A stretch of 63,066 bases of DNA, counting the filler, from Salisapilia sapeloensis CBS 127946 (taxonomy: Eukaryota; Protista; Oomycota), in NCBI GenBank assembly GCA_023334545.1. It is 6 parts of 6 records of this genome, joined end to end, with 100 filler letters (N's around TTAATTAATTAA, not from the genome) between each part and the next. Parts side by side here need not be neighbours in the genome. Positions count along the whole stretch, not along the records: positions 47,634 to 59,817 come from JAADVB010000416.1; 5 more parts are not named here. The stretch is one strand, 5' to 3'. The notes under the pieces are model-generated. The model did not search any database. It was not told where the DNA came from and saw only the letters and a program-made list of their open reading frames with translations. The number at the start of each line of letters is the position of its first letter. The stretch's first letter is position 1. Positions 47,634 to 59,817 of the stretch are shown here, in pieces. Both the position numbers and the translations under genes were made by a program.

Positions 47634-47832
47634 ATTCTTCGCGAAGCGTCAATTGGTGACGCTCTTCTCTGCGCCCAACTACTGCGGCGAGTTCGACAAT
47701 GCCGGCGCGATGATGTCGGTGGACGAGACGCTCATGTGTTCGTTCCAGATCCTAAAGCCCGCGGAGAAAAAGCAACGCTATGCGTACAATGGCCTAGGTG
47801 CCCAGCGTGGAGCGACGCCACCCCGAAAGTAA
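47634..47832 (+). CDS. PPP1C: Serine/threonine protein phosphatase 1 catalytic subunit, C-terminal fragment (not in ORF track)
   Basis: [46 protein letters not shown]...GATPPRK*, the signature PP1 C-terminus. 5' part lost in the gap. Confidence 0.95.
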
Positions 47833-47975
47833 AGTCGAGAGTAGGAATGTCGTAAGATGATGAAAGAGCTTTTTATAGAGACATCTATGAAGAGATACGA
47901 GTTCAAAAGTTAGGAAGAATAAGAGCATGCCATTTATTTCCTTTGTCGTGACGGAACGTGTTTGCAGTGCTTGGA

Positions 47976-48893
47976 CTAGGAAGTGGATTGGATAGAGTCC
48001 GCCGACTGGGCAAATGTCGCACACTTCACTGTGTTCACTAGGAGCATGGCGATGGTCATGGGGCCAATGCCGCCTGGCACGGGCGTGATGGCCGACGCCC
48101 TCTCGCTGGCAGACGCAAAATGAACATCTCCACACACTCGGTATCCCTTCTTCGAATCAGCATCGTCGACGTAGTTCATACCGACATCCACGACCACTGC
48201 ACCTGGCTGGAGCCAGTCACCTGGAATGAATTCTGGTGCTCCAGCGGCGACCACGACGATGTCGGCTCTAGCGACTTTTTCGTAGAGGTCTTTGGTAGAG
48301 GTATGACAAGTGGTCACAGTGGCGTTTCGTCGGAGCATGAGGAGGCTGAGAGGGAGACCAACGAGCTGGCTTCTTCCAATCACTACGACGTCCTTGCCTT
48401 CGATGTCGACGTTGTTTCGGTCCAAAAGCTCAAGGCAGCCTGCTGGGGTGCAAGGCTGGAGGTACAATTTGCTGGAGCTGGACTGTGCAGTTGCGACGGG
48501 TTTCTTGCCGAGCTGAGCAAAGTGCGTAGCGTGAAGGGCATCCACGTCCTTCCAGGTGACCACAGACTCCAAGAGCTCTTCCTCATGCTCATGAAGGTCC
48601 CCTGGAAGAGGCAGTTGGAGGAGGATTCCATGGACGGAAGAGTCGGTATTCAGCTTTACGATCAACGAATGAACGTCCTCAAAGGACGAGGAGGCAGGAA
48701 GCTCATGCACATCAGGCGTAATGCCAACTCGATTGCACGCATTTTTCTTCAGCCGAATGTACGTCTTCGACGCTTGGTCGTCTCCTACTAGCACTAGAGA
48801 TACTTTGGGCGGAGAAGGTAGTGCAGCAATGCTCTCCTTTAGCTCTGCCTCAATTTCCTTGCTGCATGCCTTGCCATCCAGTAGTCGAGCCAT
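47976..48893 (-). CDS. folD: Bifunctional methylene-THF dehydrogenase/methenyl-THF cyclohydrolase
   Basis: LVGDDQASKTYIRLKKNAC (YxxxK), GILLQLPLP, KDVD, PCTPAG, VVIGRS, VDVGMN, ITPVPGGIGPMTIAML. Confidence 0.95.
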   Translation of the reverse strand: MARLLDGKACSKEIEAELKESIAALPSPPKVSLVLVGDDQASKTYIRLKKNACNRVGITPDVHELPASSSFEDVHSLIVKLNTDSSVHGILLQLPLPGDLHEHEEELLESVVTWKDVDALHATHFAQLGKKPVATAQSSSSKLYLQPCTPAGCLELLDRNNVDIEGKDVVVIGRSQLVGLPLSLLMLRRNATVTTCHTSTKDLYEKVARADIVVVAAGAPEFIPGDWLQPGAVVVDVGMNYVDDADSKKGYRVCGDVHFASASERASAITPVPGGIGPMTIAMLLVNTVKCATFAQSADSIQSTS

Positions 48894-48991
48894 GACGCAA
48901 TTTGAATATGGAGGTTATGCCCTTTCGTTCCACAAAAGTTTTCCGACAACAGTAAAAACGATATATGTACCGCCAATTACTCCTCATAAGT

Positions 48992-51900
48992 CTACCACTT
49001 TCCAATGTACGTCCGCAGCAGTTTGTCGTCAATGCTAGGGCACTCGATGCCGGCGTGTTTTAGCAATCCATCGGCAATCGACGCATCGAACACCATGTCG
49101 TTCTGCAAATACACTTCAAACGCATCCAGTCCGGCTGCCAGTCGCTGTCCTTCGAGACTCTCGTCTGCCATGCTCAAGATCGTCTCTTTCCACTTTTGAT
49201 ACTCGACCTTCTCTAAGCTCTTGGCGTTCTCGACCTTTTCTTTTCCAGCTGCAATCAACTCGTCAAAGAATGCAGCACCGTCGATGGGTTCCACTGGGTT
49301 CTGCATGTGCAGCGTCTGGCCTAGAGACGCCGTGGGGACTTGCGCTGCAAAGTGCGTCACGGCTCTAGCTGCAAAGTCCACTGGCGTCATGTCAAATCGC
49401 CAATCCGGTCGATCGGGCACCATTCCAGCGCTCCAGCAGCCTCTTAAGAGTAGGTAGATAAAGTCGCTTTCGTTCCATGCTCCCGTGACGGACGACGGCG
49501 CCATGTTGCCTGGACGTAGAATCGATACAGGCAACCCTCTCTGCGCTGCCTCGCGACACATGGACTCTGCAACCCACTTACTCTGCGCATATCCATTGTC
49601 CAACTGTTCCCAGCTATTAGTCAAGTCCGCAGTCTCCTTGAGCACTTTGTTAGGGAAAGTGGACGGGAAGACTCCGTTCGTCGAGATGTAGTGCACAGGC
49701 TTCACGCGCGTCTTGGCCAGACCATTCGTGACAGCTAGACGCAGCACTTCTTGGGTGCCGAGGACGTTGGAGCTCTTCAAAGAGGCGTATGGCTTGACCA
49801 GGTTCACGTCAGCTCCGCAGTGGATGATAGCGTCCACCTCCATTGCCAGCATCTTGAACGTGTCGTTTCCCAAGCCGAGCAAAGGCTGGGCCAAGTCACC
49901 AGCTAACGGCACGATACGATCCTCCACGTCATGGTCCGCTAGCTCCTTATACAGTTTATACTTTTGAAGCGTCTGGCGAAGACGCTTGCCAACGTCTTCA
50001 CCATTCGCTCCTCGAGCCACGCAATACACCATCACGTGCGTTGACTTGATCAGTTCGTGCAGGACGTGGATACCGAGGAAGCCCGTGGCACCAGTCAGAA
50101 GTAACGTACGTGGCGGCTTACCCACCATCTCAACACGGTAGCGAGAGTACCCTGCTTTTCTCGTTGCGGCTGGGTAGATAGACATGTCTAGAGCTGCTTC
50201 TAGCGGAAGTACCAGTTGGGATCCATTTTCCTCCGCTTCCGGTTCGTGCGTTAGCTTACTGTCGATCTTGGCTGCAATCTTCTCCAGCTCCGGACCGGAC
50301 AAGACGTCTGCCAGCGTGAAGTTGACGCCGAACGTGTCTTTGATGCTCGAGACCAAGCGTGCTGACAAGAGACTGTGGCCGCCCGCCTCGAAGAAACTCT
50401 TGTGCCGATGTAGCCCTGCTTTACTCTTCAGGCGCAGCAGATCGACCCAGATGTCTAGCAGCTTGTGTTCCGTAGCAGTCTGCGGCTGAGATTCGGCATC
50501 CACCGTGGCATCCATGGACTCGTTACGCAGTTTGACGGCTTCTTCCACTGACGGAATCTGCTTTCTGTCGAGCTTTCCACTGGCGTTGTTGATCGGAAGA
50601 GCATCGAGCTGGACAAAGACGGACGGAATGGCGTAGTGCGGCAGTCTCGAGCTGAGAAAGTCACGAAGCTTGGCACTACTGGGCACACGCTCCCAGTCAC
50701 CTGGAACAATGTACGCGACGAGTCTCTTATCAGATCCTTCGTCTCCCTCCGTCAAGACCACTGCGGTTGACACGAGAGGGTGCTGCGCCAACGCACTTTC
50801 TACAGCGCCCAACACGACGCTGTACCCTCGGATCTTGACCATAAAGTCACATCGGCCGATGAGCTCTAGCGAGCCATTCGGCAGGAAACGAGCACGGTCG
50901 CCAGTCTTGTACACGAGTTCGCCTCGGACAATGTCGCGACGGAACCGTTCGGCTGTCTGCTCTGGACGATTCAAGTAGCCGATTGCGAGACAAGGGCCTC
51001 CAATGTAGAGTTCTCCCGGGACACCGATGGTCACTTGTTCTAACTTGTCGTCCAGAATGTACGCCTTGACATTCGGCATGACGTGACCACAGGATGCGTA
51101 CTTGCCAGTAAGTGCGACGTCCAAAGGGTTCATGTGCGCCAAGTCGACGGTGCACACGTCATGACATTCCGACACACTATAGAGGTTCTGGAGCTCACAG
51201 TCTGGTAGTAGGCGCATGAACCTCTGTCGCAACTCCATCGTCACGACTTCGCCACACAAAAAGACGATTCGAAGAGATGCAAGTTGCCTTTTCAAGTCCT
51301 CTTCTTCACACGTGTCAAGAACAAGCTGCAGTAAGGATGGAGTGAAGAGCACACGGGTGATATGGTGGTCCAGCATGTACTGCGCCACCTGCGCTGGATC
51401 GTAGATGGTGTTGTCTGGAATCACGTACGTCGTACGATTGCCTAGTATCGGACGCAAGAGTTCCCACACAAAGAAGACATGGCACGCTTCTCGTTCATTC
51501 TCTCCATATGGGAGGTTGGTCAGACGCCAGTGATACGAGTGGACTGCTCCTCTATGCGGACAGCAAATACCCTTCGGCACGCCAGTCGTACCGGAGGACA
51601 TGACAACGTATGCTAGATCATCCGGGTGTGTCTTAATACGGTCCGCAGGCATGACCGGGATCTTTTTTTTCTCCAGTCCGTCCATCCACCCTTCGTCCAT
51701 GCACAGCGTTTCTTGCCATGCTGGAAGACGAGAGCGATAGAGCTGCTTGGTGAGAATCGTAATCGGTTTGGATTCTTCCATGACTCTTTCGAGAAGATCT
51801 GGCGGATACACGATCTCGAGGGGCATGTAGGCTCCACCAGCCTTGAGAGCTGCGACGTATGCGATGACGAATTCGAGGCAGTGGTCCATGAAGATACCCG

Positions 51901-52924
51901 TGATCGTATTCGGACGAACACCAGCAGCGTAGAGGTAGTCTGCAAGTCGCTCGCTTTGGACATCCAGTTCCCCAAATGTAAGCGATTTGTCTTCGTAGAC
52001 CACAGCAGTCGCGTTCGGAGAGCGCTTTACGGCTTCATAGAAAAGGTCATGGAGACACTTGTCGCTAGGGTAGGATGCAGTAGCAGCGTTCCAGTCGTTA
52101 ATTTTAGTCTTGCTTTCAATCGCATTGCGTGCGAGGAGAGACTCGAGTTTGGATGACATGGACGATAGAAATGCTGTTTCGCTCTCTTGCGTCAGGTAGA
52201 AGTGCCCACCTTGGAATATCTCCATCTCAAAACCTACACTGCAGTCGGTCGAGTGCAAGTGCTTCCAATTTTCCAGGCCTTGTTGAGGAACAGAGGCGTC
52301 GGTATCTCCACCATAGACAGACAGGCCGATCGTATCCAAGCAGATAGTGTCTTTCTTGGTTTGCAGTGACTTGGAGACTGCATTATGAAGCTTGAGATCG
52401 TTGCGGAGCTTTTTTAGTACTTCCTGACGCTTGGAGGCAACCTCCAAGATGCCGGCGGGCGTCCCATTCCAGTCACGCAGTAGCTTGACGAGCTTTTCCT
52501 CACTCTGCAGCGTTGCAGAGTCGAATATGTCGCTTCCACCCATTGGATTTGATCCAGATAGGAAGAGGTGCATTGGAAGAGCCAAGCCTTTGGACTGGAG
52601 ATGGTCCAGCAGAGCGACGGCAGTCAACGCACCCAGTGAATGGCCAAACACAACGTACGGTTTATCAAAGAACCCAGTGCTCATACAGCCCATAGCCTTT
52701 TGCAACCACAAGTCTAAGTCGACTGAGTCCGTTTCATTCGTGTCGGACGCCCACTCCCAATCCAAACTCCACGTTTCGATGGGCACGTGGGCCGACGTAA
52801 GATGCTGGTGCCAATCTTCGGCGAAAGATGCTGCAAAGCTGCCGGCAGGAGGGAGGACAAGAAGCCTCAACGGTGCTTCTTCAACTTCTTCCACTCGGTG
52901 GAACTTCATGCGCGTCTGAACCAT
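48992..52924 (-). CDS. NRPS-like enzyme, domain order TE-A-T-R (thioesterase, adenylation, carrier protein, thioester reductase); ATRR/carboxylate-reductase-like
   Basis: TE: VFGHSLG, GGDTD, FQGGHFYL. A: YVVMSSGTTGVPKG, GELYIGGPCLAIGYLNRP, YKTGDRAR, GRCDFMVKIRGY, NASGKLDRK. T: FFEAGGHSLLS. R: LLTGATGFLG, IIHCGADVN, GYAQSKWVAE, RPGNM. Intronless, 1310 aa. Domain calls are well supported; substrate is not known. Confidence 0.92.
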   Translation of the reverse strand: MVQTRMKFHRVEEVEEAPLRLLVLPPAGSFAASFAEDWHQHLTSAHVPIETWSLDWEWASDTNETDSVDLDLWLQKAMGCMSTGFFDKPYVVFGHSLGALTAVALLDHLQSKGLALPMHLFLSGSNPMGGSDIFDSATLQSEEKLVKLLRDWNGTPAGILEVASKRQEVLKKLRNDLKLHNAVSKSLQTKKDTICLDTIGLSVYGGDTDASVPQQGLENWKHLHSTDCSVGFEMEIFQGGHFYLTQESETAFLSSMSSKLESLLARNAIESKTKINDWNAATASYPSDKCLHDLFYEAVKRSPNATAVVYEDKSLTFGELDVQSERLADYLYAAGVRPNTITGIFMDHCLEFVIAYVAALKAGGAYMPLEIVYPPDLLERVMEESKPITILTKQLYRSRLPAWQETLCMDEGWMDGLEKKKIPVMPADRIKTHPDDLAYVVMSSGTTGVPKGICCPHRGAVHSYHWRLTNLPYGENEREACHVFFVWELLRPILGNRTTYVIPDNTIYDPAQVAQYMLDHHITRVLFTPSLLQLVLDTCEEEDLKRQLASLRIVFLCGEVVTMELRQRFMRLLPDCELQNLYSVSECHDVCTVDLAHMNPLDVALTGKYASCGHVMPNVKAYILDDKLEQVTIGVPGELYIGGPCLAIGYLNRPEQTAERFRRDIVRGELVYKTGDRARFLPNGSLELIGRCDFMVKIRGYSVVLGAVESALAQHPLVSTAVVLTEGDEGSDKRLVAYIVPGDWERVPSSAKLRDFLSSRLPHYAIPSVFVQLDALPINNASGKLDRKQIPSVEEAVKLRNESMDATVDAESQPQTATEHKLLDIWVDLLRLKSKAGLHRHKSFFEAGGHSLLSARLVSSIKDTFGVNFTLADVLSGPELEKIAAKIDSKLTHEPEAEENGSQLVLPLEAALDMSIYPAATRKAGYSRYRVEMVGKPPRTLLLTGATGFLGIHVLHELIKSTHVMVYCVARGANGEDVGKRLRQTLQKYKLYKELADHDVEDRIVPLAGDLAQPLLGLGNDTFKMLAMEVDAIIHCGADVNLVKPYASLKSSNVLGTQEVLRLAVTNGLAKTRVKPVHYISTNGVFPSTFPNKVLKETADLTNSWEQLDNGYAQSKWVAESMCREAAQRGLPVSILRPGNMAPSSVTGAWNESDFIYLLLRGCWSAGMVPDRPDWRFDMTPVDFAARAVTHFAAQVPTASLGQTLHMQNPVEPIDGAAFFDELIAAGKEKVENAKSLEKVEYQKWKETILSMADESLEGQRLAAGLDAFEVYLQNDMVFDASIADGLLKHAGIECPSIDDKLLRTYIGKW

Positions 52925-53201
52925 GGTCTAGCGGATGGAGGGATCTGTCGCTCCCGCCGGTCGATTTCGTTATGATCTGATACGATGCAGATCAAGTTTC
53001 ACAAAATACCACACACTAGAAGATGGCTACATGTCGGAACGAATTGCATCGCTTGGAATAGACATTCTTGGCGTCTATTCTTAGTTTCTTTCTAGGGTGA
53101 GAGCTCGAGTACGATAGACTGGGCGAGCATCGGCATGGTATGTTCATGTTCTCTATCTTTTTTAAGGATATACGTGTTGGAATTGCATTTAACTTCTTTT
53201 T

Positions 53202-54923
53202 ATGAAGGAAGCGAATAGTACGCCTATAGATGGAGGGAATGAGTCGCCTCGGCACTCGGAAGCATCATTTTACGCCAGCGAGATATACGAATCGGAGTTT
53301 GAAGAAGAGGGAGAGACGACTATCACTAGGAAGTCTAGTCTATCATCTCCCACTAAGGCGGATGACCAAGATGTAGTCTTGGGTTCCGACGACAAAGCAA
53401 TGGCTATAGAAGAGAGTGAAAGCATACAACGTTTGAATACACCACGGCGCTCACTTCCATTTCTATCCAAGCTACCTAGTGTCAGCGAGAAAGAATATTT
53501 TAACCTTGAATCCAAGGAAGACTCGATGCAGGACCGAGATAGTGATGCAGAAACAAATGCATCGAGCAATCCAACACGGAAAGAGTCGCAGCCAGATGAA
53601 GGTCTACCACATGAGATTAGTCCACAGACTAATCAATCGGAGTCGCAACTGTTGAGCCCATCAAGCATCAGCGAATTGCATGAAGAGGTGTCCGTATCTC
53701 GAGAAGAAGCATTGGACGATAAACATAGTGGGATACTAAAGAAAGACGCGAGCGTACATGTAGATGCTGCTGGAACTACTGAAGTAAAGGACGCTTCACT
53801 GGAGGGAGAAATTGTCGAGGCTGATGACAAAAATCTGACGGATAGCACCTCAGCAGCTGTTATCATTGGGGATGGTAACTTGGCGAAAGTTGAAGGCATA
53901 TCGATGTCAAAGTCAAACACGGCAAGTGAACAAACGAATGAACACGTCGAAAAGAGAATGCAATTCAAGATGGATGAAAATGTCGAGGAAGGTTCAAAAC
54001 CACCGATTTGTCGTCATCAGACACCGCGATTCGTCGAGACTAAAGAAGATAACGCTACTCGCTCATCCGTCGGAAAAGGAAATCACCACCAAAGTAAAGA
54101 CGCGATGGAAGACCACAGTTCTACTACTCTAGCACCTATCTTCCCAACGAAACACCCACCTACTAGAAATTTACCGCATAAAAGTTCTGCATCTCGATCT
54201 CCAAGTAAGGTTTCGTCGGGAAGCACTTACGATGAATATCAACTTCCTCCGCGAAAGCCAGAAGTATTTAAGCAAAAAGGTACGAAGAGTCCTACGAAGC
54301 CTATCAAAGCCCAGCCGCCTGCTCGAGGGCCCAGCAACATCCAGATGCATCTAGAGAAGGCAACTGAGGAACAGCGACGATGGCTATTCTTTAACATGTT
54401 TCGCCACGGACAAACCTTGGACAAGTACGAAGAGTTTGTACCGAAAGAGATTGCACTAGCGAATTCTACACTTTTACCAATGAAGAACCAGGGAGTACAT
54501 AAAGAAGCAGTTCCACCTGGAGAGAGGCAACGAATGACGAAAGCTTACAGTGGTGGGAGGGGGCGGAAACTTTTGAATGGTCATACTGTACAGCATGGCC
54601 AACAGTGGATCGAACCGAAGCCGCATGACTCTGCGCTGTCTACTTATGACTCGATCCTTGACAAGTATTGTAAAACCGTGACGAGTCCTACAATCCAGCG
54701 TCAAATTTATAAAGCACGAGAAACAGATTTGTCTCCGCAACAGGCGTATGTCCTACAGCAACGTGTCGAGCGTGAATGGAGACGAGGGAATGGAAATAGC
54801 TTTGGTGGCGTTAGCTCTTCTTACACGACAGCGATTGTCCCTTTGCCACCAACGAAATCAGCATCTCGACGACCAAGCAGACCACATACATCCAACAGGC
54901 GAGAAAATGTGAATAAAAAGTAG
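53202..54923 (+). CDS. Hypothetical protein, mostly disordered with a short folded-looking C-terminal region
   Basis: 573-aa ORF, acidic Ser/Glu-rich N-terminus; C-terminal segment ATEEQRRWLFFNMFRHGQTLDKYEEFVP. No family recognised. Confidence 0.7.
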   Translation: MKEANSTPIDGGNESPRHSEASFYASEIYESEFEEEGETTITRKSSLSSPTKADDQDVVLGSDDKAMAIEESESIQRLNTPRRSLPFLSKLPSVSEKEYFNLESKEDSMQDRDSDAETNASSNPTRKESQPDEGLPHEISPQTNQSESQLLSPSSISELHEEVSVSREEALDDKHSGILKKDASVHVDAAGTTEVKDASLEGEIVEADDKNLTDSTSAAVIIGDGNLAKVEGISMSKSNTASEQTNEHVEKRMQFKMDENVEEGSKPPICRHQTPRFVETKEDNATRSSVGKGNHHQSKDAMEDHSSTTLAPIFPTKHPPTRNLPHKSSASRSPSKVSSGSTYDEYQLPPRKPEVFKQKGTKSPTKPIKAQPPARGPSNIQMHLEKATEEQRRWLFFNMFRHGQTLDKYEEFVPKEIALANSTLLPMKNQGVHKEAVPPGERQRMTKAYSGGRGRKLLNGHTVQHGQQWIEPKPHDSALSTYDSILDKYCKTVTSPTIQRQIYKARETDLSPQQAYVLQQRVEREWRRGNGNSFGGVSSSYTTAIVPLPPTKSASRRPSRPHTSNRRENVNKK

Positions 54924-55774
54924 CTCGATGTTGCTTGAAAACGATATGAGTTGCTCTTGACTTGAAAACACGGAGAAACGCTAAATGTACCTTTCATTTC
55001 CGTATGCTTCATAGTATTGGAGTGGGAACTATACTTCTGCGTGTGTGCATGCATCTGCATTTTGCATGGGGTGCAGAATGCGAACCGTGCAAGTGTTTAT
55101 ACTCTTTAAAGGAATACATAGTACAGAATAGCATCTACGTTACGATTACCAACTTATGATTTTGCGTTCAAATACACCTCCGTTCTGCTGATGGAAACTT
55201 CTGCAGGGCGAGTCGAAACTAATGGCATACCACTATGATTTTAAAGACTAAATTCCCTTCCAATTTTGACGCTGCAATGAGATATAGGATAGATGATGAT
55301 GGAATGGTAATCTGGACTATTTTCCATCAGTTCGTTTCAAATTCAATGAACGTTTCATTTACACATTCCAGGCTCTTGATGAACTATACTGAGTATGAGC
55401 GATTTAGCAGAGGAGCTTCGACAAACGAAGCGCGAATTGAACAATGCTCGAAAGTTGATTCACATTCAAGATGCAGAGATAAAGGCATTAAAGGATTCAG
55501 TCCAAAAGCTACAAGCACCACCGAGGGTAATAGACTATTGTATATTCTTGATGATGCTTTAATACAAGAAGAGACTTTTTGTTAACCATCCAATACATTC
55601 ACTAGATGCGTCACGCTGACTGTAGAGAGAGCTCACAAAGTACTCGACGGAGTAGGTAATTCAGAAGATTTCTATTAGAAACCTTAATTTTGATCTCACT
55701 TTTCACCTCATCGTAGAAAACAAATCGGTCTACTACATGATGGACTGAATCGAAGAGAGATAGAAGCTTGTAGG

Positions 55775-57811
55775 TTGCAATTAGACCAAAATGATTCGCA
55801 AAGACGGTCATCTTTCGCGAACAAAACCCGGAATTCAGTCAACTTTAATCGAAGACAAAGTTTGGAGGATGCAAGTGGTAGTTACTTCGACGATACCAAT
55901 GTACAAAGCACAGAGCCACTTTCATCGCAAGTACAGCTAGTGAGATCCTCGCTCCGCAATAAGTCGTCCACTTTTGTTCAAAAGATGAGACGTCAGCGAC
56001 AGATAGCAGAGCAATACAAACAGTCGCGACTCGCTGAGTTGGAGGTTGAGTGCGAGCTAGAAGAAAATATACATCTTCGCATGAGGAGAAAGAGAGCAAA
56101 ACCTCTAAAGCACTTGCCGCCTGACAGAGTTGGAAGAGAATGTTTCAATGACGAAGAGATACTTTTGCGAACCGTTATCGAGAACTGCAACTCATCATCC
56201 TCTAACGCTTCAGTTGAAAAAGAAGCAATGCTTAATAGTTCTATTAGTAGAAACATACAGGACGGATATGAAGTGCACAGTAGACAGAAACCGCCAGAGC
56301 AAGAGGAGGAGCAGTTTCTCGATCCTGATAAGCACGTGCAGTTGCATCGCCGTTCAGATGCTGCACTCACGATACAACGTCACTGGAGGCAGCATCGTGA
56401 GCGGATAGACAGTTGTACAAGGATCAATGGGTTTAGTGAAGAAAATGTGTACACCTACGCTGATGATTCCGACGAAAGTGAAGAAAATAGTGATAAAAGT
56501 TATGATGAAGGTGAAAGCTCGTCCGACATTCATGCCATTATGAACGATGCGGAGGACATAGTAAATGACAAGTATGAGGAAAGTAATGTGCAAGAATGGG
56601 AAAATCAAGATACTGTTGATTGCATCGACGCGGATTCGGATGGAGAACGTGTCTTGGAGCGAAGCGAACAAGCTCAAGACATAGAAAATGTACATGATAA
56701 TGTTGCAGAGATTCAAGAGACTATTCCAGTTGACGTAACTGCTGCTATAACAGCTTCAGTGCTGAATAAAATCGAGTATGAAGAAGATACTGATGTTGGA
56801 GTACCCAACAATCTAAGTGGAAACTTAGGCCAGCACAAGGATGAAATATATGCGTCTACATCTGACCTGCCGATTAATAAAATAAAGAAGGAGGATTCCA
56901 TTGTAGCCATTGCATCTTCAGAGCAACACGAAAGTGAGCAACTAGAAGAGAATATTAAAGGATCGAAAGAAAATCTAGGTAGAAGTTTAGAGCATAACAA
57001 GGATGAAGTAGGTTCCGCGACGTCTGAATCAATTGCTGACAATACAAAGGAAGACGGTATAATTGATACCGTGCCAGCTTTAGTGCGAAACGAAAGCGAA
57101 AAAGCAGAAAAGAGTACTGTTGGAACACAAGAAAATTTAAACGGAAACTTGGCGCGCAAGAAGGATGACGTAGTTGCGTCTACATTTAAACCATTGATCG
57201 GTGGTACAAACGACGATGATGCAGTTGCTTCTTTAGTACCATCTCAACAGCGTGAAAGTGAGTATAAAGAAAGTATGGATGTTGGAGCAGATATGAATGT
57301 AGATGAAAAATTGGAGCAAAACGAGGTAGACAATGATATATCTGCGTCCGAACCACTAGCCAGCGATACAGGGAAAGGCGAGAGAGCTGGTCAGAGTAGC
57401 AATGCTGATCAAGAAAATGATATTGTTGTAGGAAAAATGGAAGGTGAAAGTATAAATGGTACTGGCCAGACTGATGTCGATGATATCAGAGCTGACCGTA
57501 CTCCTCGAAACAGTACTGGTCACACTTCTCCTAGCGACGCATCCCATGAAAATTACGATGATGCGGCAAATGACTACTCATCGTCTAGACCAGAAGTATC
57601 TATAGATGATGCCACAAGTAACACTACAGCAAAGGGCGATAAGCTAGAAGAAGATAATGAAGCCAATGAGCATGCACAGAAATTTTATGGTGTCGATGAC
57701 GCAGATCCAGAAACATCTTCAAAGTTGAACTCAGTTCTACATGAAGTCGATCGTGCAATCCATGCAGCCGCCGAGCGTATACAAAAGTTTTGGAAACGAT
57801 ATCGAAACTAG
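55775..57811 (+). CDS. Acidic IQ-motif protein with 54-aa internal repeats; upstream exons near 55200-55750 likely
   Basis: IQ motifs AALTIQRHWRQHRER and C-terminal AAAERIQKFWKRYRN. Long open frame; no ATG at the listed start, so additional 5' exons are probable. Confidence 0.7.
   Translation: MQLDQNDSQRRSSFANKTRNSVNFNRRQSLEDASGSYFDDTNVQSTEPLSSQVQLVRSSLRNKSSTFVQKMRRQRQIAEQYKQSRLAELEVECELEENIHLRMRRKRAKPLKHLPPDRVGRECFNDEEILLRTVIENCNSSSSNASVEKEAMLNSSISRNIQDGYEVHSRQKPPEQEEEQFLDPDKHVQLHRRSDAALTIQRHWRQHRERIDSCTRINGFSEENVYTYADDSDESEENSDKSYDEGESSSDIHAIMNDAEDIVNDKYEESNVQEWENQDTVDCIDADSDGERVLERSEQAQDIENVHDNVAEIQETIPVDVTAAITASVLNKIEYEEDTDVGVPNNLSGNLGQHKDEIYASTSDLPINKIKKEDSIVAIASSEQHESEQLEENIKGSKENLGRSLEHNKDEVGSATSESIADNTKEDGIIDTVPALVRNESEKAEKSTVGTQENLNGNLARKKDDVVASTFKPLIGGTNDDDAVASLVPSQQRESEYKESMDVGADMNVDEKLEQNEVDNDISASEPLASDTGKGERAGQSSNADQENDIVVGKMEGESINGTGQTDVDDIRADRTPRNSTGHTSPSDASHENYDDAANDYSSSRPEVSIDDATSNTTAKGDKLEEDNEANEHAQKFYGVDDADPETSSKLNSVLHEVDRAIHAAAERIQKFWKRYRN
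56810..57295 (+). repeat. Degenerate coding tandem repeat, 162 bp (54 aa) period, three copies plus a partial fourth
   Basis: Units start at 56810, 56972 and 57134: NLSGNLGQHKDEIYAST..., NLGRSLEHNKDEVGSAT..., NLNGNLARKKDDVVAST..., each with ESE at positions 41-43. Confidence 0.75.
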
Positions 57812-57905
57812 ATTGGGCATTTAGCAGTGTGTTTACTTCATAAGGAAACCTTATCAGAGGTATCACTACTGGTATGCACCATAGCTTTGTGTGCTAAAAG
57901 TCAGC

Positions 57906-58739
57906 TTACACGTCGTGCTGAGATGCAGGATCCCAGCCACTGATGTAGTTTGCGTCAAGGCCATCCAGGCGTTCCATTTGATCCGCGGTCAGCTTTAAGT
58001 CCATAGCTTCAAAGTTCTCCTTGATCCGCGCCGCTTTCTCAGACTTTGGCAGGGTCACAAAGCCCTTTGCCAGACTCCACGCGATCATGACTTGCGCCGG
58101 CGTTGCACCGGATTCTTTTGCAATGTCGCCAGCAACAGGGTCATCGAACTTTTGGCCACGAACAAGTGGAGAGTAAGCCTCCATGAGAATTCCTTCGTTC
58201 TTGCAGTATTCCACCAACTCCTTTCGTTGCAACCACGGATGAAGCTCCATTTGGTTTACTGCAGGCTTGACACGACAATGACTTAAAAGTTTCTTAATGT
58301 GGTTGATACCAAAGTTCGAGATGCCAATGTCTTTAACGATCCCTTCCTTTTGCATATCTTCCAATGCTCTCCAACGCTCTCCGCGGGTTTCACTGTCAAA
58401 TGGAGCGTGGAGGAGGTAGAGGTCGATGTAGCCGCACCCAATCCGGTCATTGCACTGCTTGATGGTCTTCACAGCATCATCGTAGGAGCAAGACCGTTCG
58501 ACTAGCTTACTCGTGATGAAGATTTCCTCTCTCGGGATGCCGGAATCACGCACAGCACTCCCTGTATCCTCCTCATTTCTATAAGCTTGGGCAGTATCCA
58601 CATGTCTGTAGCCGAGACGCAAGGCTTCTCGGACAGCATTATAGGTTGTCGGGCCAGGTGTGATCTGATAGACACCGAAACCAACGGTAGGAATAGCTTG
58701 TCCACTCGGCAAGAGCGTCGTAGGGCACTTCATGCTCAT
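57906..58739 (-). CDS. Aldo-keto reductase (AKR5 / 2,5-diketo-D-gluconate reductase-like)
   Basis: Catalytic tetrad in GYRHVDTAQAYRNE (D, Y), FITSKL (K), DLYLLHAP (H); also IGISNF, NQMELHP, AYSPL, LPKS. Confidence 0.93.
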   Translation of the reverse strand: MSMKCPTTLLPSGQAIPTVGFGVYQITPGPTTYNAVREALRLGYRHVDTAQAYRNEEDTGSAVRDSGIPREEIFITSKLVERSCSYDDAVKTIKQCNDRIGCGYIDLYLLHAPFDSETRGERWRALEDMQKEGIVKDIGISNFGINHIKKLLSHCRVKPAVNQMELHPWLQRKELVEYCKNEGILMEAYSPLVRGQKFDDPVAGDIAKESGATPAQVMIAWSLAKGFVTLPKSEKAARIKENFEAMDLKLTADQMERLDGLDANYISGWDPASQHDV

Positions 58740-59047
58740 CTGTGGTCAAGAATGTCGGTGAGTCTTCGGCCTCTCCTCTAAATCTTTGAGTATTATCAGA
58801 TCTGGTTATGATTCTACAGTGACGGCGCTATGAAAGCTGTGTGCTTAAATCATCAATTTGGTCGTGTAGTATCACCATTCATAGCTCGGATGATCAGGAC
58901 TTCTGCCTACGGAAGAGAAGCTAGGATAAAAGATCAATTTGAATGGGTGTTTAAAGCCATCTTATTCTTGTCCATAAAATATAGCTTTAATACTCATGAT
59001 ATTTTAAGACGACGACGATTTGCCTACTATCTCATACTCGCGAGACC

Positions 59048-59720
59048 ATGATTTCCTGCGTCGCTGTCGTCGCCGCTTCTGTACGTACTTTGGCTTACTT
59101 TAACGGAAGTGCATAAGCACAGTTTCTTCTGTCTTTACTTGTGCAAATAGCATCGTGAGAATACTCTCTTGAAGTACTAGAAGCGACTAATATAGCATTT
59201 ATTACTAGAATGCGCCGCTATACGTTCGATCTTTTGAGGATGAAGAAGACTTGGCCTTTCACCATATCGCTCACGTATCACTTGATCTGGTAGAAGACCG
59301 GCTGCGCTCTTTGGATGTATCCGGGCTTCGAAATGACATGTACCTTGGCTTCCTTGGACCCGTCGAAGACTACCGAGTGTACGGCCTGCTTTCTCAGTGT
59401 ATTGATGAGGGAGTATTTAGCGTGGACTCATCCTTAGATAGATACGGCTACATCACAAACACATCCGTCAAGTTTTTTGCGATTCTCCAAGACGGACCAG
59501 CAAGGGATATTGATCTTCGACCAGTAACTCTCCCTATTTATTACAGACGTATCCTCAGCTAAAATGTCGCGATCAGTTCTTTGTAGAGTTACACAAGATG
59601 TATGTGAACGTCATATCAAACCCTTTTGCGCTCATTGACGACCGCCCGATCTCTTCCAAGCGTTTTGACAGTACCATCTACTCGCTTGTTGTCAACCACA
59701 ATCATGTCGCGCCGTACTAA
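59048..59720 (+). CDS. TRAPPC2L: TRAPP complex subunit 2-like (sedlin family); four exons
   Basis: MISCVAVVAAS|NAPLYVRSF...FHHIAHVSLDLVEDR...MYLGFLGPVEDYRV|YGYITNTSVKFF...|LHKMYVNVISNPF...ISSKRFD; TAA at 59718-59720. Confidence 0.88.
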
Positions 59721-59817
59721 TCGAAATCAATCCCCCTGACCATATCGTATCCTCATCGCTCTTGTCGGCCTACATGTTCATGCCTTCTAAATCCAAATCT
59801 ACCTCGTCCTTTTTCAC

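Follow-up and report, generated by a model that had tools for sequence, protein, structure and literature searches.

Enzymes that work through carrier proteins usually rely for their upkeep on type II thioesterases (TEIIs) that are separate proteins. In the oomycete Plasmopara halstedii, PhalNRPS_3 was described as an "unusual monomodular NRPS" (nonribosomal peptide synthetase) with an N-terminal thioesterase (TE), an adenylation (A) domain, a carrier or thiolation (T) domain and, at the C-terminus, a reductase (Red; here R) domain (Sharma et al. 2015, BMC Genomics, PMC4594904). A second system of relevance is the fungal ATRR, which reduces glycine betaine to choline and whose A domain lacks Asp235 and binds the trimethylammonium group through an aromatic cage, F201/W204/W270, together with E304 (Hai, Huang, Tang 2019). 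ATRR is also found in plant-parasitic nematodes (PMC11050029). Here we describe a TE-A-T-R gene of the oomycete Salisapilia sapeloensis CBS 127946, lying in a 63,066-nucleotide stretch of DNA (the window, to which all positions refer) joined from six records of assembly GCA_023334545.1. The gene is an orthologue of oomycete NRPS_3, and its architecture, known in oomycetes since 2015, is not itself a new discovery. What is added here is a predicted ATRR-family core with a substrate hypothesis, the apparent single-origin TEII ancestry of the TE, its putative status as an accessory domain decaying across protists, and transcript support. We propose, with a probability of about 0.5, that the protein may be a reductase of onium acids of the betaine type, whose TEII is dispensable and acts in cis to clear the carrier when it is mis-acylated.

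The gene is a single uninterrupted open reading frame (ORF) of 1310 aa in the part of the window at 47,634-59,817 (JAADVB010000416.1), and Pfam places in it, from N- to C-terminus, thioesterase, adenylation, carrier and thioester reductase domains (Table 1). The start codon (context ACCATGG at 52924) is secure: the short leader holds no other ATG, and 6 nt upstream there is a TAG in the same frame. Neither a stop nor a splice interrupts the region between the TE and A domains, and the fusion is in frame. Transcript evidence came from contigs assembled from three runs (samples) of one study, which give transcript ends inexactly. Contigs at 48944-52950 (runs X2 and X5) and 48945-52965 (run X4) each cover the whole ORF in one piece; the downstream methylenetetrahydrofolate dehydrogenase/cyclohydrolase (MTHFD) gene (contig up to 48934) and the divergent upstream gene have contigs of their own. 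The same runs spliced out a 70-nt GT..AG intron of the upstream gene, indicating that they are indeed RNA. TE and A-T-R are one processed, intronless transcript and are expressed as a single mRNA. The preliminary description of this DNA had pointed to the N-terminal placement of the TE as unusual, which is upheld, since TEIIs normally stand alone and this one is in frame with A-T-R on one mRNA.

An intact type-II-like TE had been placed upstream of the A domain at 52140-52890, which corresponds to aa 13-262 of the ORF and is confirmed; the three motifs quoted for it, LLVLPPAGSFAASF (aa 21-34), GHSLG (aa 94-98) and GGHFYL (aa 239-244), are all present in the translation. The pattern was described at the time as GrsT/RifR-like. 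In a phmmer search of PDB, the closest solved structures by sequence were RifR (3fla; E 1.6e-14, 57 bits) and human TE2 (4xjv; 3e-11, 46 bits), with further matches to RedJ (32 bits), BorB, ClbQ and SrfD, while the type I TEs SrfA-C, DEBS and ObiF1 scored just 16-17 bits. An AlphaFold2 model of the TE (predicted local distance difference test score 90.3; predicted template modeling score 0.91) is a confident alpha/beta-hydrolase with lid helices, and its top Foldseek fold matches are all type II TEs, namely RifR, RedJ, BorB, ClbQ and YbtT. When a profile was built from 18 fused TEs, bacterial proteins of the stand-alone "thioesterase II family" reached 130-196 bits with it, and a type I TE from a C-terminus reached just 15 bits. 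An NCBIfam scan of the TE domain alone gave no match.

The catalytic residues were assigned by comparison with RifR, whose triad is S94/D200/H228 (PMC6568194), and this narrows the Asp candidates previously left open to Asp209, aligned with RifR Asp200. Across 18 fused TE domains, which are 22-42% identical to that of the query, the invariant columns are essentially catalytic (G94, H95, S96, G98, D209, G239 and H241), and the Ser/Asp/His triad, GxSxG and GxHF are unchanged across oomycetes and five other lineages. We regard the TE-A-T-R architecture and the TEII class of its first domain as very nearly certain, and, judging by its conserved motifs, the TE looks catalytically competent. The initial observation is therefore confirmed, well above chance; the interpretation attached to it was reasonable in part, as described below. 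Two of the stand-alone TEII matches (P0149 and P0152) are TEIIs fused to a 4'-phosphopantetheinyl transferase domain (PF01648), another type of carrier-servicing fusion.

The remainder of the protein carries the A-domain motifs SGTTGVPKG (444), YKTGD (672), GRCDFMVKIRG (690) and GKLDR (783), the carrier motif GGHSL (848) and the R-domain motifs TGATGFLG (944) and YAQSK (1112), and its R domain scores 283 bits against TIGR01746 (cut-off 213). With A core motifs, a pantetheine Ser and the R-domain TGxxGxxG and YxxxK, the query is by its motifs an NRPS-like carboxylate reductase (A-T-R). The closest R-domain matches are MxaA and the R domain of MxcG, which are described as alcohol-forming reductases. 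Beyond TE-bearing proteins, the nearest relatives are diatom A-T-R proteins (~43% identity), followed by animal A-T-R-R proteins (~40% over A-T-R), one of which carries the NCBI name glycine betaine reductase ATRR.

Substrate pocket residues were mapped by HMMER alignments to canonical A domains and by family alignments, and are numbered by the canonical PheA positions of the Stachelhaus code (Table 1). The query pocket lacks the alpha-amino-binding Asp235 and has aromatics (F484, W487 and F555) and an acid (D589) at the positions implicated by Hai et al. Where relatives have no N-terminal extension, these four pocket residues fall at F198-204, W201-207, W269-274 and D304-308, a numbering and spacing that match F201/W204/W270/E304 of the fungal enzyme. 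The motifs VFFVWE, ITRxLFTPS, xWLCGEVV and NLYSxSE(C/S)HD are common, with occasional single substitutions, to oomycete TE-A-T-R, diatom A-T-R, animal ATRR and the bacterial A-T-R clade. The A5 core motif reads NLYSVSECHD (aa 580-589; window 51157-51186, minus strand) where NxYGPTE is canonical, and this deviation is family-wide, bacterial and animal members included. On the strength of these alignments we place the A-T-R core in the ATRR (glycine betaine reductase) family, an assignment that we list as new. The shared pocket supports a small cationic acid as the predicted substrate, and a betaine-type compound appears slightly more probable than all other possibilities combined.

The best full-length matches to the query are 20-plus oomycete proteins of ~1300 aa, with the same Pfam set and 59-64% identity over 99% of the query, from sources that include Nothophytophthora, Phytophthora, Globisporangium, Peronospora, Bremia, Plasmopara and Lagenidium. 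Outside the oomycetes, TE-A-T-R proteins occur in EukProt entry Nk52, Triparma and several other protist sequences. Phylogenies were inferred as quick trees with Shimodaira-Hasegawa-like approximate likelihood ratio support only, so that the root and the direction of any transfer are outside their reach. The tree of A-T-R cores contains three well-supported groups, one of bacterial A-T-R, one of animal A-T-R-R and one of protists (support 99). The protist clade holds all TE-bearing proteins together with diatom A-T-R proteins and ochrophytes with a degenerate TE. Oomycetes form a clade (support 100) in which the query is sister to seven other oomycete sequences and is the most divergent oomycete copy sampled. 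Twelve A-T-R members of the protist clade have no TE; 11 of them lie in the subclade holding the named diatoms and the other is P0039. In the TE tree, 19/19 fused TEs group together (support 97) in a clade that lies within the stand-alone TEIIs of bacteria, in agreement with their type II class. The starred branches of the core tree force no more than one TE origin, and the pattern fits a single origin of the fusion from bacterial-type TEIIs. One "stand-alone" sequence, P0238, also fell within the clade of fused TEs; it was rejected as an unfused relative and is a long-branch bacterial cluster TEII. Horizontal gene transfer had also been raised as a possibility, and a recent transfer was rejected: the gene tree follows oomycete relationships, the locus is partly syntenic, and there is no compositional contrast (GC 0.51-0.56 across TE-A-T-R versus 0.52-0.54 in the MTHFD gene on one flank and 0.41-0.48 on the opposite flank).

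Identity between the query and 11 oomycetes is 39% in the TE, 75% in the A domain and 62% in each of the T and R domains. Among three Phytophthora species, the ratio of nonsynonymous to synonymous substitution rates (dN/dS) is 0.20-0.32 for the TE, 0.02-0.03 for the A domain, where dS is near saturation, and 0.07-0.11 for the R domain. A TE ratio of 0.2-0.3 indicates selection for a working hydrolase. In several relatives outside the oomycetes the TE has degenerated: Tribonema keeps the N-terminal TE extension without the His, Chrysoparadoxa keeps it (full-length alignment) with Gly for Ser and no His, one further relative has Glu for the TE Ser, and a partial model from Discosporangium matches the TE and has no His. 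The degenerate TEs of ochrophytes, N-terminal extensions of 210-260 aa in P0032, P0033, P0095 and P0107 that read GHELG or GHGFG or have no His, look like pseudo-enzyme remnants of the fusion. Diatoms and degenerate-TE ochrophytes nevertheless retain the A-T-R pocket. Since the TE was lost or inactivated while A-T-R was kept, it is probably an accessory domain and the core chemistry would have no need of it. We suggest that in oomycetes selection maintains the TE as a working hydrolase, one that is dispensable for the core chemistry.

In the mechanism that we favor, the A domain would adenylate a carboxylic acid that is small and cationic, with glycine betaine or an onium compound close to it as the most likely candidate. 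The acyl group would be loaded onto the pantetheine arm at Ser851, from which the R domain, using NADPH, would release the aldehyde and possibly carry it onward to the alcohol. The N-terminal TE would act in cis as a slow, non-essential housekeeping hydrolase of the single carrier domain, removing those acyl groups that are beyond the reach of the R domain, such as mis-activated acids or the acetyl left by mis-priming, and regenerating holo-T. The weak constraint on the TE and the pattern of its loss and inactivation are best fitted by a housekeeping editing TEII of this kind. A cis-acting proofreader was one of two roles offered in the preliminary description, and it is plausible given the nesting of the TE among TEIIs, its weaker constraint than that of A and R, and its loss or inactivation in relatives that keep A-T-R; taken by itself, the editing role falls a little short of an even chance.

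Several points weigh against this proposal. TEII specificity is not predictable from sequence, and some TEIIs, such as RedJ, supply precursors instead of editing (review PMC4147253). The pocket was mapped from published residue numbers of fungal ATRR and from annotation-named animal homologues, and the triad was assigned from alignment columns. Position 299 is Phe in the query, whereas it is usually Trp (M, V, N or I in some relatives), and the pocket acid is Asp where the fungal ATRR has Glu, such that two of the four pocket residues are conservative substitutes. The second reductase domain (R2), which acts on the aldehyde and defines ATRR, is absent, as just 11 residues follow R1 and contain no PF00106 match, and animal homologues extend ~273 residues further than the query. 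A literature search found neither later functional work on oomycete TE-A-T-R nor biochemistry of any TE-A-T-R protein.

Among other explanations, precursor supply survives best. It was published for the orthologue PhalNRPS_3 (Sharma et al. 2015, PMC4594904), and under it the TE would hydrolyze a carrier-bound or CoA (thio)ester precursor and hand the free acid to the neighboring A domain. "Providing key intermediates" is a known TEII role, and RedJ, which supplies the precursor for RedL in prodiginine synthesis (review PMC4147253), ranks with the top matches of the query TE both by sequence and by fold; the second-best family match, human TE2, is a chain-releasing enzyme. However, in diatoms and dead-TE ochrophytes A-T-R is still highly conserved and its pocket is the same, which indicates that the core is independent of the TE for its substrate. 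The ATRR-like pocket also predicts a small free osmolyte that would require no release step, and no conserved neighboring carrier protein or synthase was found in the neighborhoods of the window, Phytophthora cactorum, Lagenidium and Triparma. We therefore consider precursor supply unlikely. An equally unlikely scenario, judged as a whole, is that TE-A-T-R is the ancestral form of a protist-wide onium-acid reductase clade, with a captured bacterial-type TEII linked in cis to the carrier domain, that would provide oomycetes with a hitherto unrecognized betaine to betaine aldehyde/choline route, and that the TE has a function beyond editing; it might gate flux, or release betaine from a conjugate in which it is held as an ester or thioester.

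It is still less probable that the TE is not directed at the carrier and is instead an esterase or acyltransferase on the product or a related metabolite (e.g., a choline or betaine ester), or a structural or regulatory module. Branches in the fused-TE clade are long and its divergence is fast, and some ochrophytes have kept dead versions at the N-terminus, a hint that the domain may contribute in a non-catalytic way. These observations are set against the invariance of the catalytic motifs and the dN/dS of 0.2-0.3 reported above, and against the fact that all close relatives of known function act on pantetheine thioesters. The other role offered in the preliminary description, a switch between hydrolytic and reductive release, has TE and R competing for one acyl-S-T and yielding acid or aldehyde as conditions dictate, NADPH supply being one of them. 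By their motifs both are catalytically intact, and they share one polypeptide with a single T domain, yet there is no condensation domain and the free acid itself is loaded. Cognate hydrolysis would only return the starting material at the cost of ATP, and a switch of this kind would amount to a futile cycle. It would also be expected to be as conserved as the R domain, whereas constraint is weakest on the TE, which has been lost in sister lineages, and we consider the switch very improbable. Lastly, several orthologues bear database names that make them a Lys2 alpha-aminoadipate reductase or, as "linear gramicidin synthase subunit D", a peptide synthetase. Such an identity is hardly credible: the match to TIGR03443 is partial and its 389.8 bits fall below the cut-off of 1030.1, the pocket is without Asp235 and fits the ATRR family instead, a condensation domain is missing, and oomycetes are generally held to make lysine via the diaminopimelate route.

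A lineage in which a TEII has long been fused to a one-module reductase offers a clean natural system for the function of editing domains, and with a single polypeptide the role of the TE can be tested by a point mutant. The putative link to the ATRR family provides a concrete and testable substrate hypothesis, namely glycine betaine or a related onium acid. The gene is conserved in all sampled oomycete pathogens of plants and animals, where it is now mis-named gramicidin synthase or Lys2.

The surroundings of the gene were also examined (Table 1). The MTHFD transcript contig ends 10 nt from that of TE-A-T-R. The two genes appear as a merged gene model (P0025) in another oomycete, are ~6 kb apart in Lagenidium and are not adjacent in Phytophthora, and synteny is a more likely explanation of their adjacency than a functional cluster. 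Runs X6-X8 (labelled as a second organism, 2025) contain contigs 90-99% identical to the TE-A-T-R and MTHFD genes (window 47952-52947) and are probably from a closely related species. In the divergent upstream gene, the ATG (53135-53137) forms the last three bases of exon 1 and is followed by the intron at 53138-53207; a short upstream ORF begins at 53024. Just ~46 bp separate the 5' ends of the divergent transcripts (52965 and 53012). The aldo-keto reductase encoded 5 kb away could in principle reduce an aldehyde product, and is not beside the orthologues in the three other genomes examined. A gene cluster was rejected, as the genes next to TE-A-T-R in the window are not those found in Phytophthora cactorum, Lagenidium and Triparma, which also differ among themselves.

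Table 1. Positions of the TE-A-T-R gene, its domains and predicted functional residues, and neighboring genes in the window
Feature	Window position	Strand	Residues (aa)	Remarks
TE-A-T-R NRPS-like enzyme, complete ORF	48992..52924	-		Coordinates include stop codon
mRNA extent (transcriptome contigs)	48944..52965	-		5' untranslated region ~26-41 nt, 3' untranslated region ~48 nt, no intron
Type-II-like TE domain	52139..52891	-	12-262	Alpha/beta hydrolase core, helical lid ~aa 136-189
Adenylation domain	50555..52072	-	285-790	
Carrier (T) domain	50270..50464	-	821-885	Phosphopantetheine site Ser851 in GGHSL
Thioester reductase domain	49004..50104	-	941-1307	TGATGFLG aa 944-951; Tyr1112 and Lys1116 in YAQSK
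Thioesterase (PF00975)			20-258	Pfam; E 1.5e-16, 61.8 bits vs cut-off 26.4
AMP-binding and AMP-binding_C			296-784	Pfam
PP-binding			821-885	Pfam
NAD_binding_4 thioester reductase			943-1189	Pfam; E 5.6e-65
Putative TE nucleophile, in GHSLG	52637..52639	-	Ser96	Aligns with RifR Ser94; invariant in 18 homologues
Putative TE triad acid, in GGDTD	52298..52300	-	Asp209	Aligns with RifR Asp200; invariant in 18 homologues
Putative TE triad base, in GGHFYL	52202..52204	-	His241	Aligns with RifR His228; invariant in 18 homologues
Pocket position 235			V483	
Pocket position 236			F484	
Pocket position 239			W487	
Pocket position 278			L526	
Pocket position 299			F555	
Pocket position 301			C557	
Pocket position 322			L581	
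Pocket position 330			D589	
Pocket position 331			V590	
Pocket position 517			K784	
Bifunctional MTHFD	47976-48893	-		Directly downstream of TE-A-T-R
Divergent upstream gene, 5' region	53012-53208	+		573-aa product, no Pfam match
678-aa ORF	55775-57811	+		No Pfam match
Aldo-keto reductase gene	57906-58739	-		5 kb from TE-A-T-R
Short ORF	59251-59562	+		Matches only part of Sedlin N-terminal region; probably one exon of a spliced gene

Of the known systems, PhalNRPS_3 and its Phytophthora homologues are closest to the query, with an identical domain order. The Pl. halstedii sequence P0022, presumably PhalNRPS_3, is 59% identical to the query over 99% of its length and groups with the other oomycete sequences in both the core and TE trees; the query differs in having Phe, not Trp, at pocket position 299. 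The likeness to ATRR lies in the A-T-R1 core, which is ~40% identical to animal ATRR-named proteins, has the family's deviant A5 motif and, by the pocket mapping, appears to share with ATRR the missing Asp235, aromatics at 236/239/299 and an acid at 330, whereas the query has no R2, has gained an N-terminal TEII, carries Asp instead of Glu and belongs to a separate, protist-wide clade. Diatom A-T-R proteins share that clade and the same pocket, but have no TE. The stand-alone TEIIs (RifR, RedJ, BorB, ClbQ, YbtT, SrfD and TE2/OLAH) have the same fold, lid, and GxSxG and GGHF motifs as the query TE, and the Ser-Asp-His triad of RifR matches it column for column; identity is 25-32%, and the query TE is unlike them in being covalently fused, N-terminal to the synthetase that it presumably serves. 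Carboxylic acid reductases (A-T-R) follow a common logic of adenylation, thiolation and NADPH-dependent thioester reduction, but they lack a TE, and the query scores just 190 bits against their family model NF041592 (cut-off 1300).

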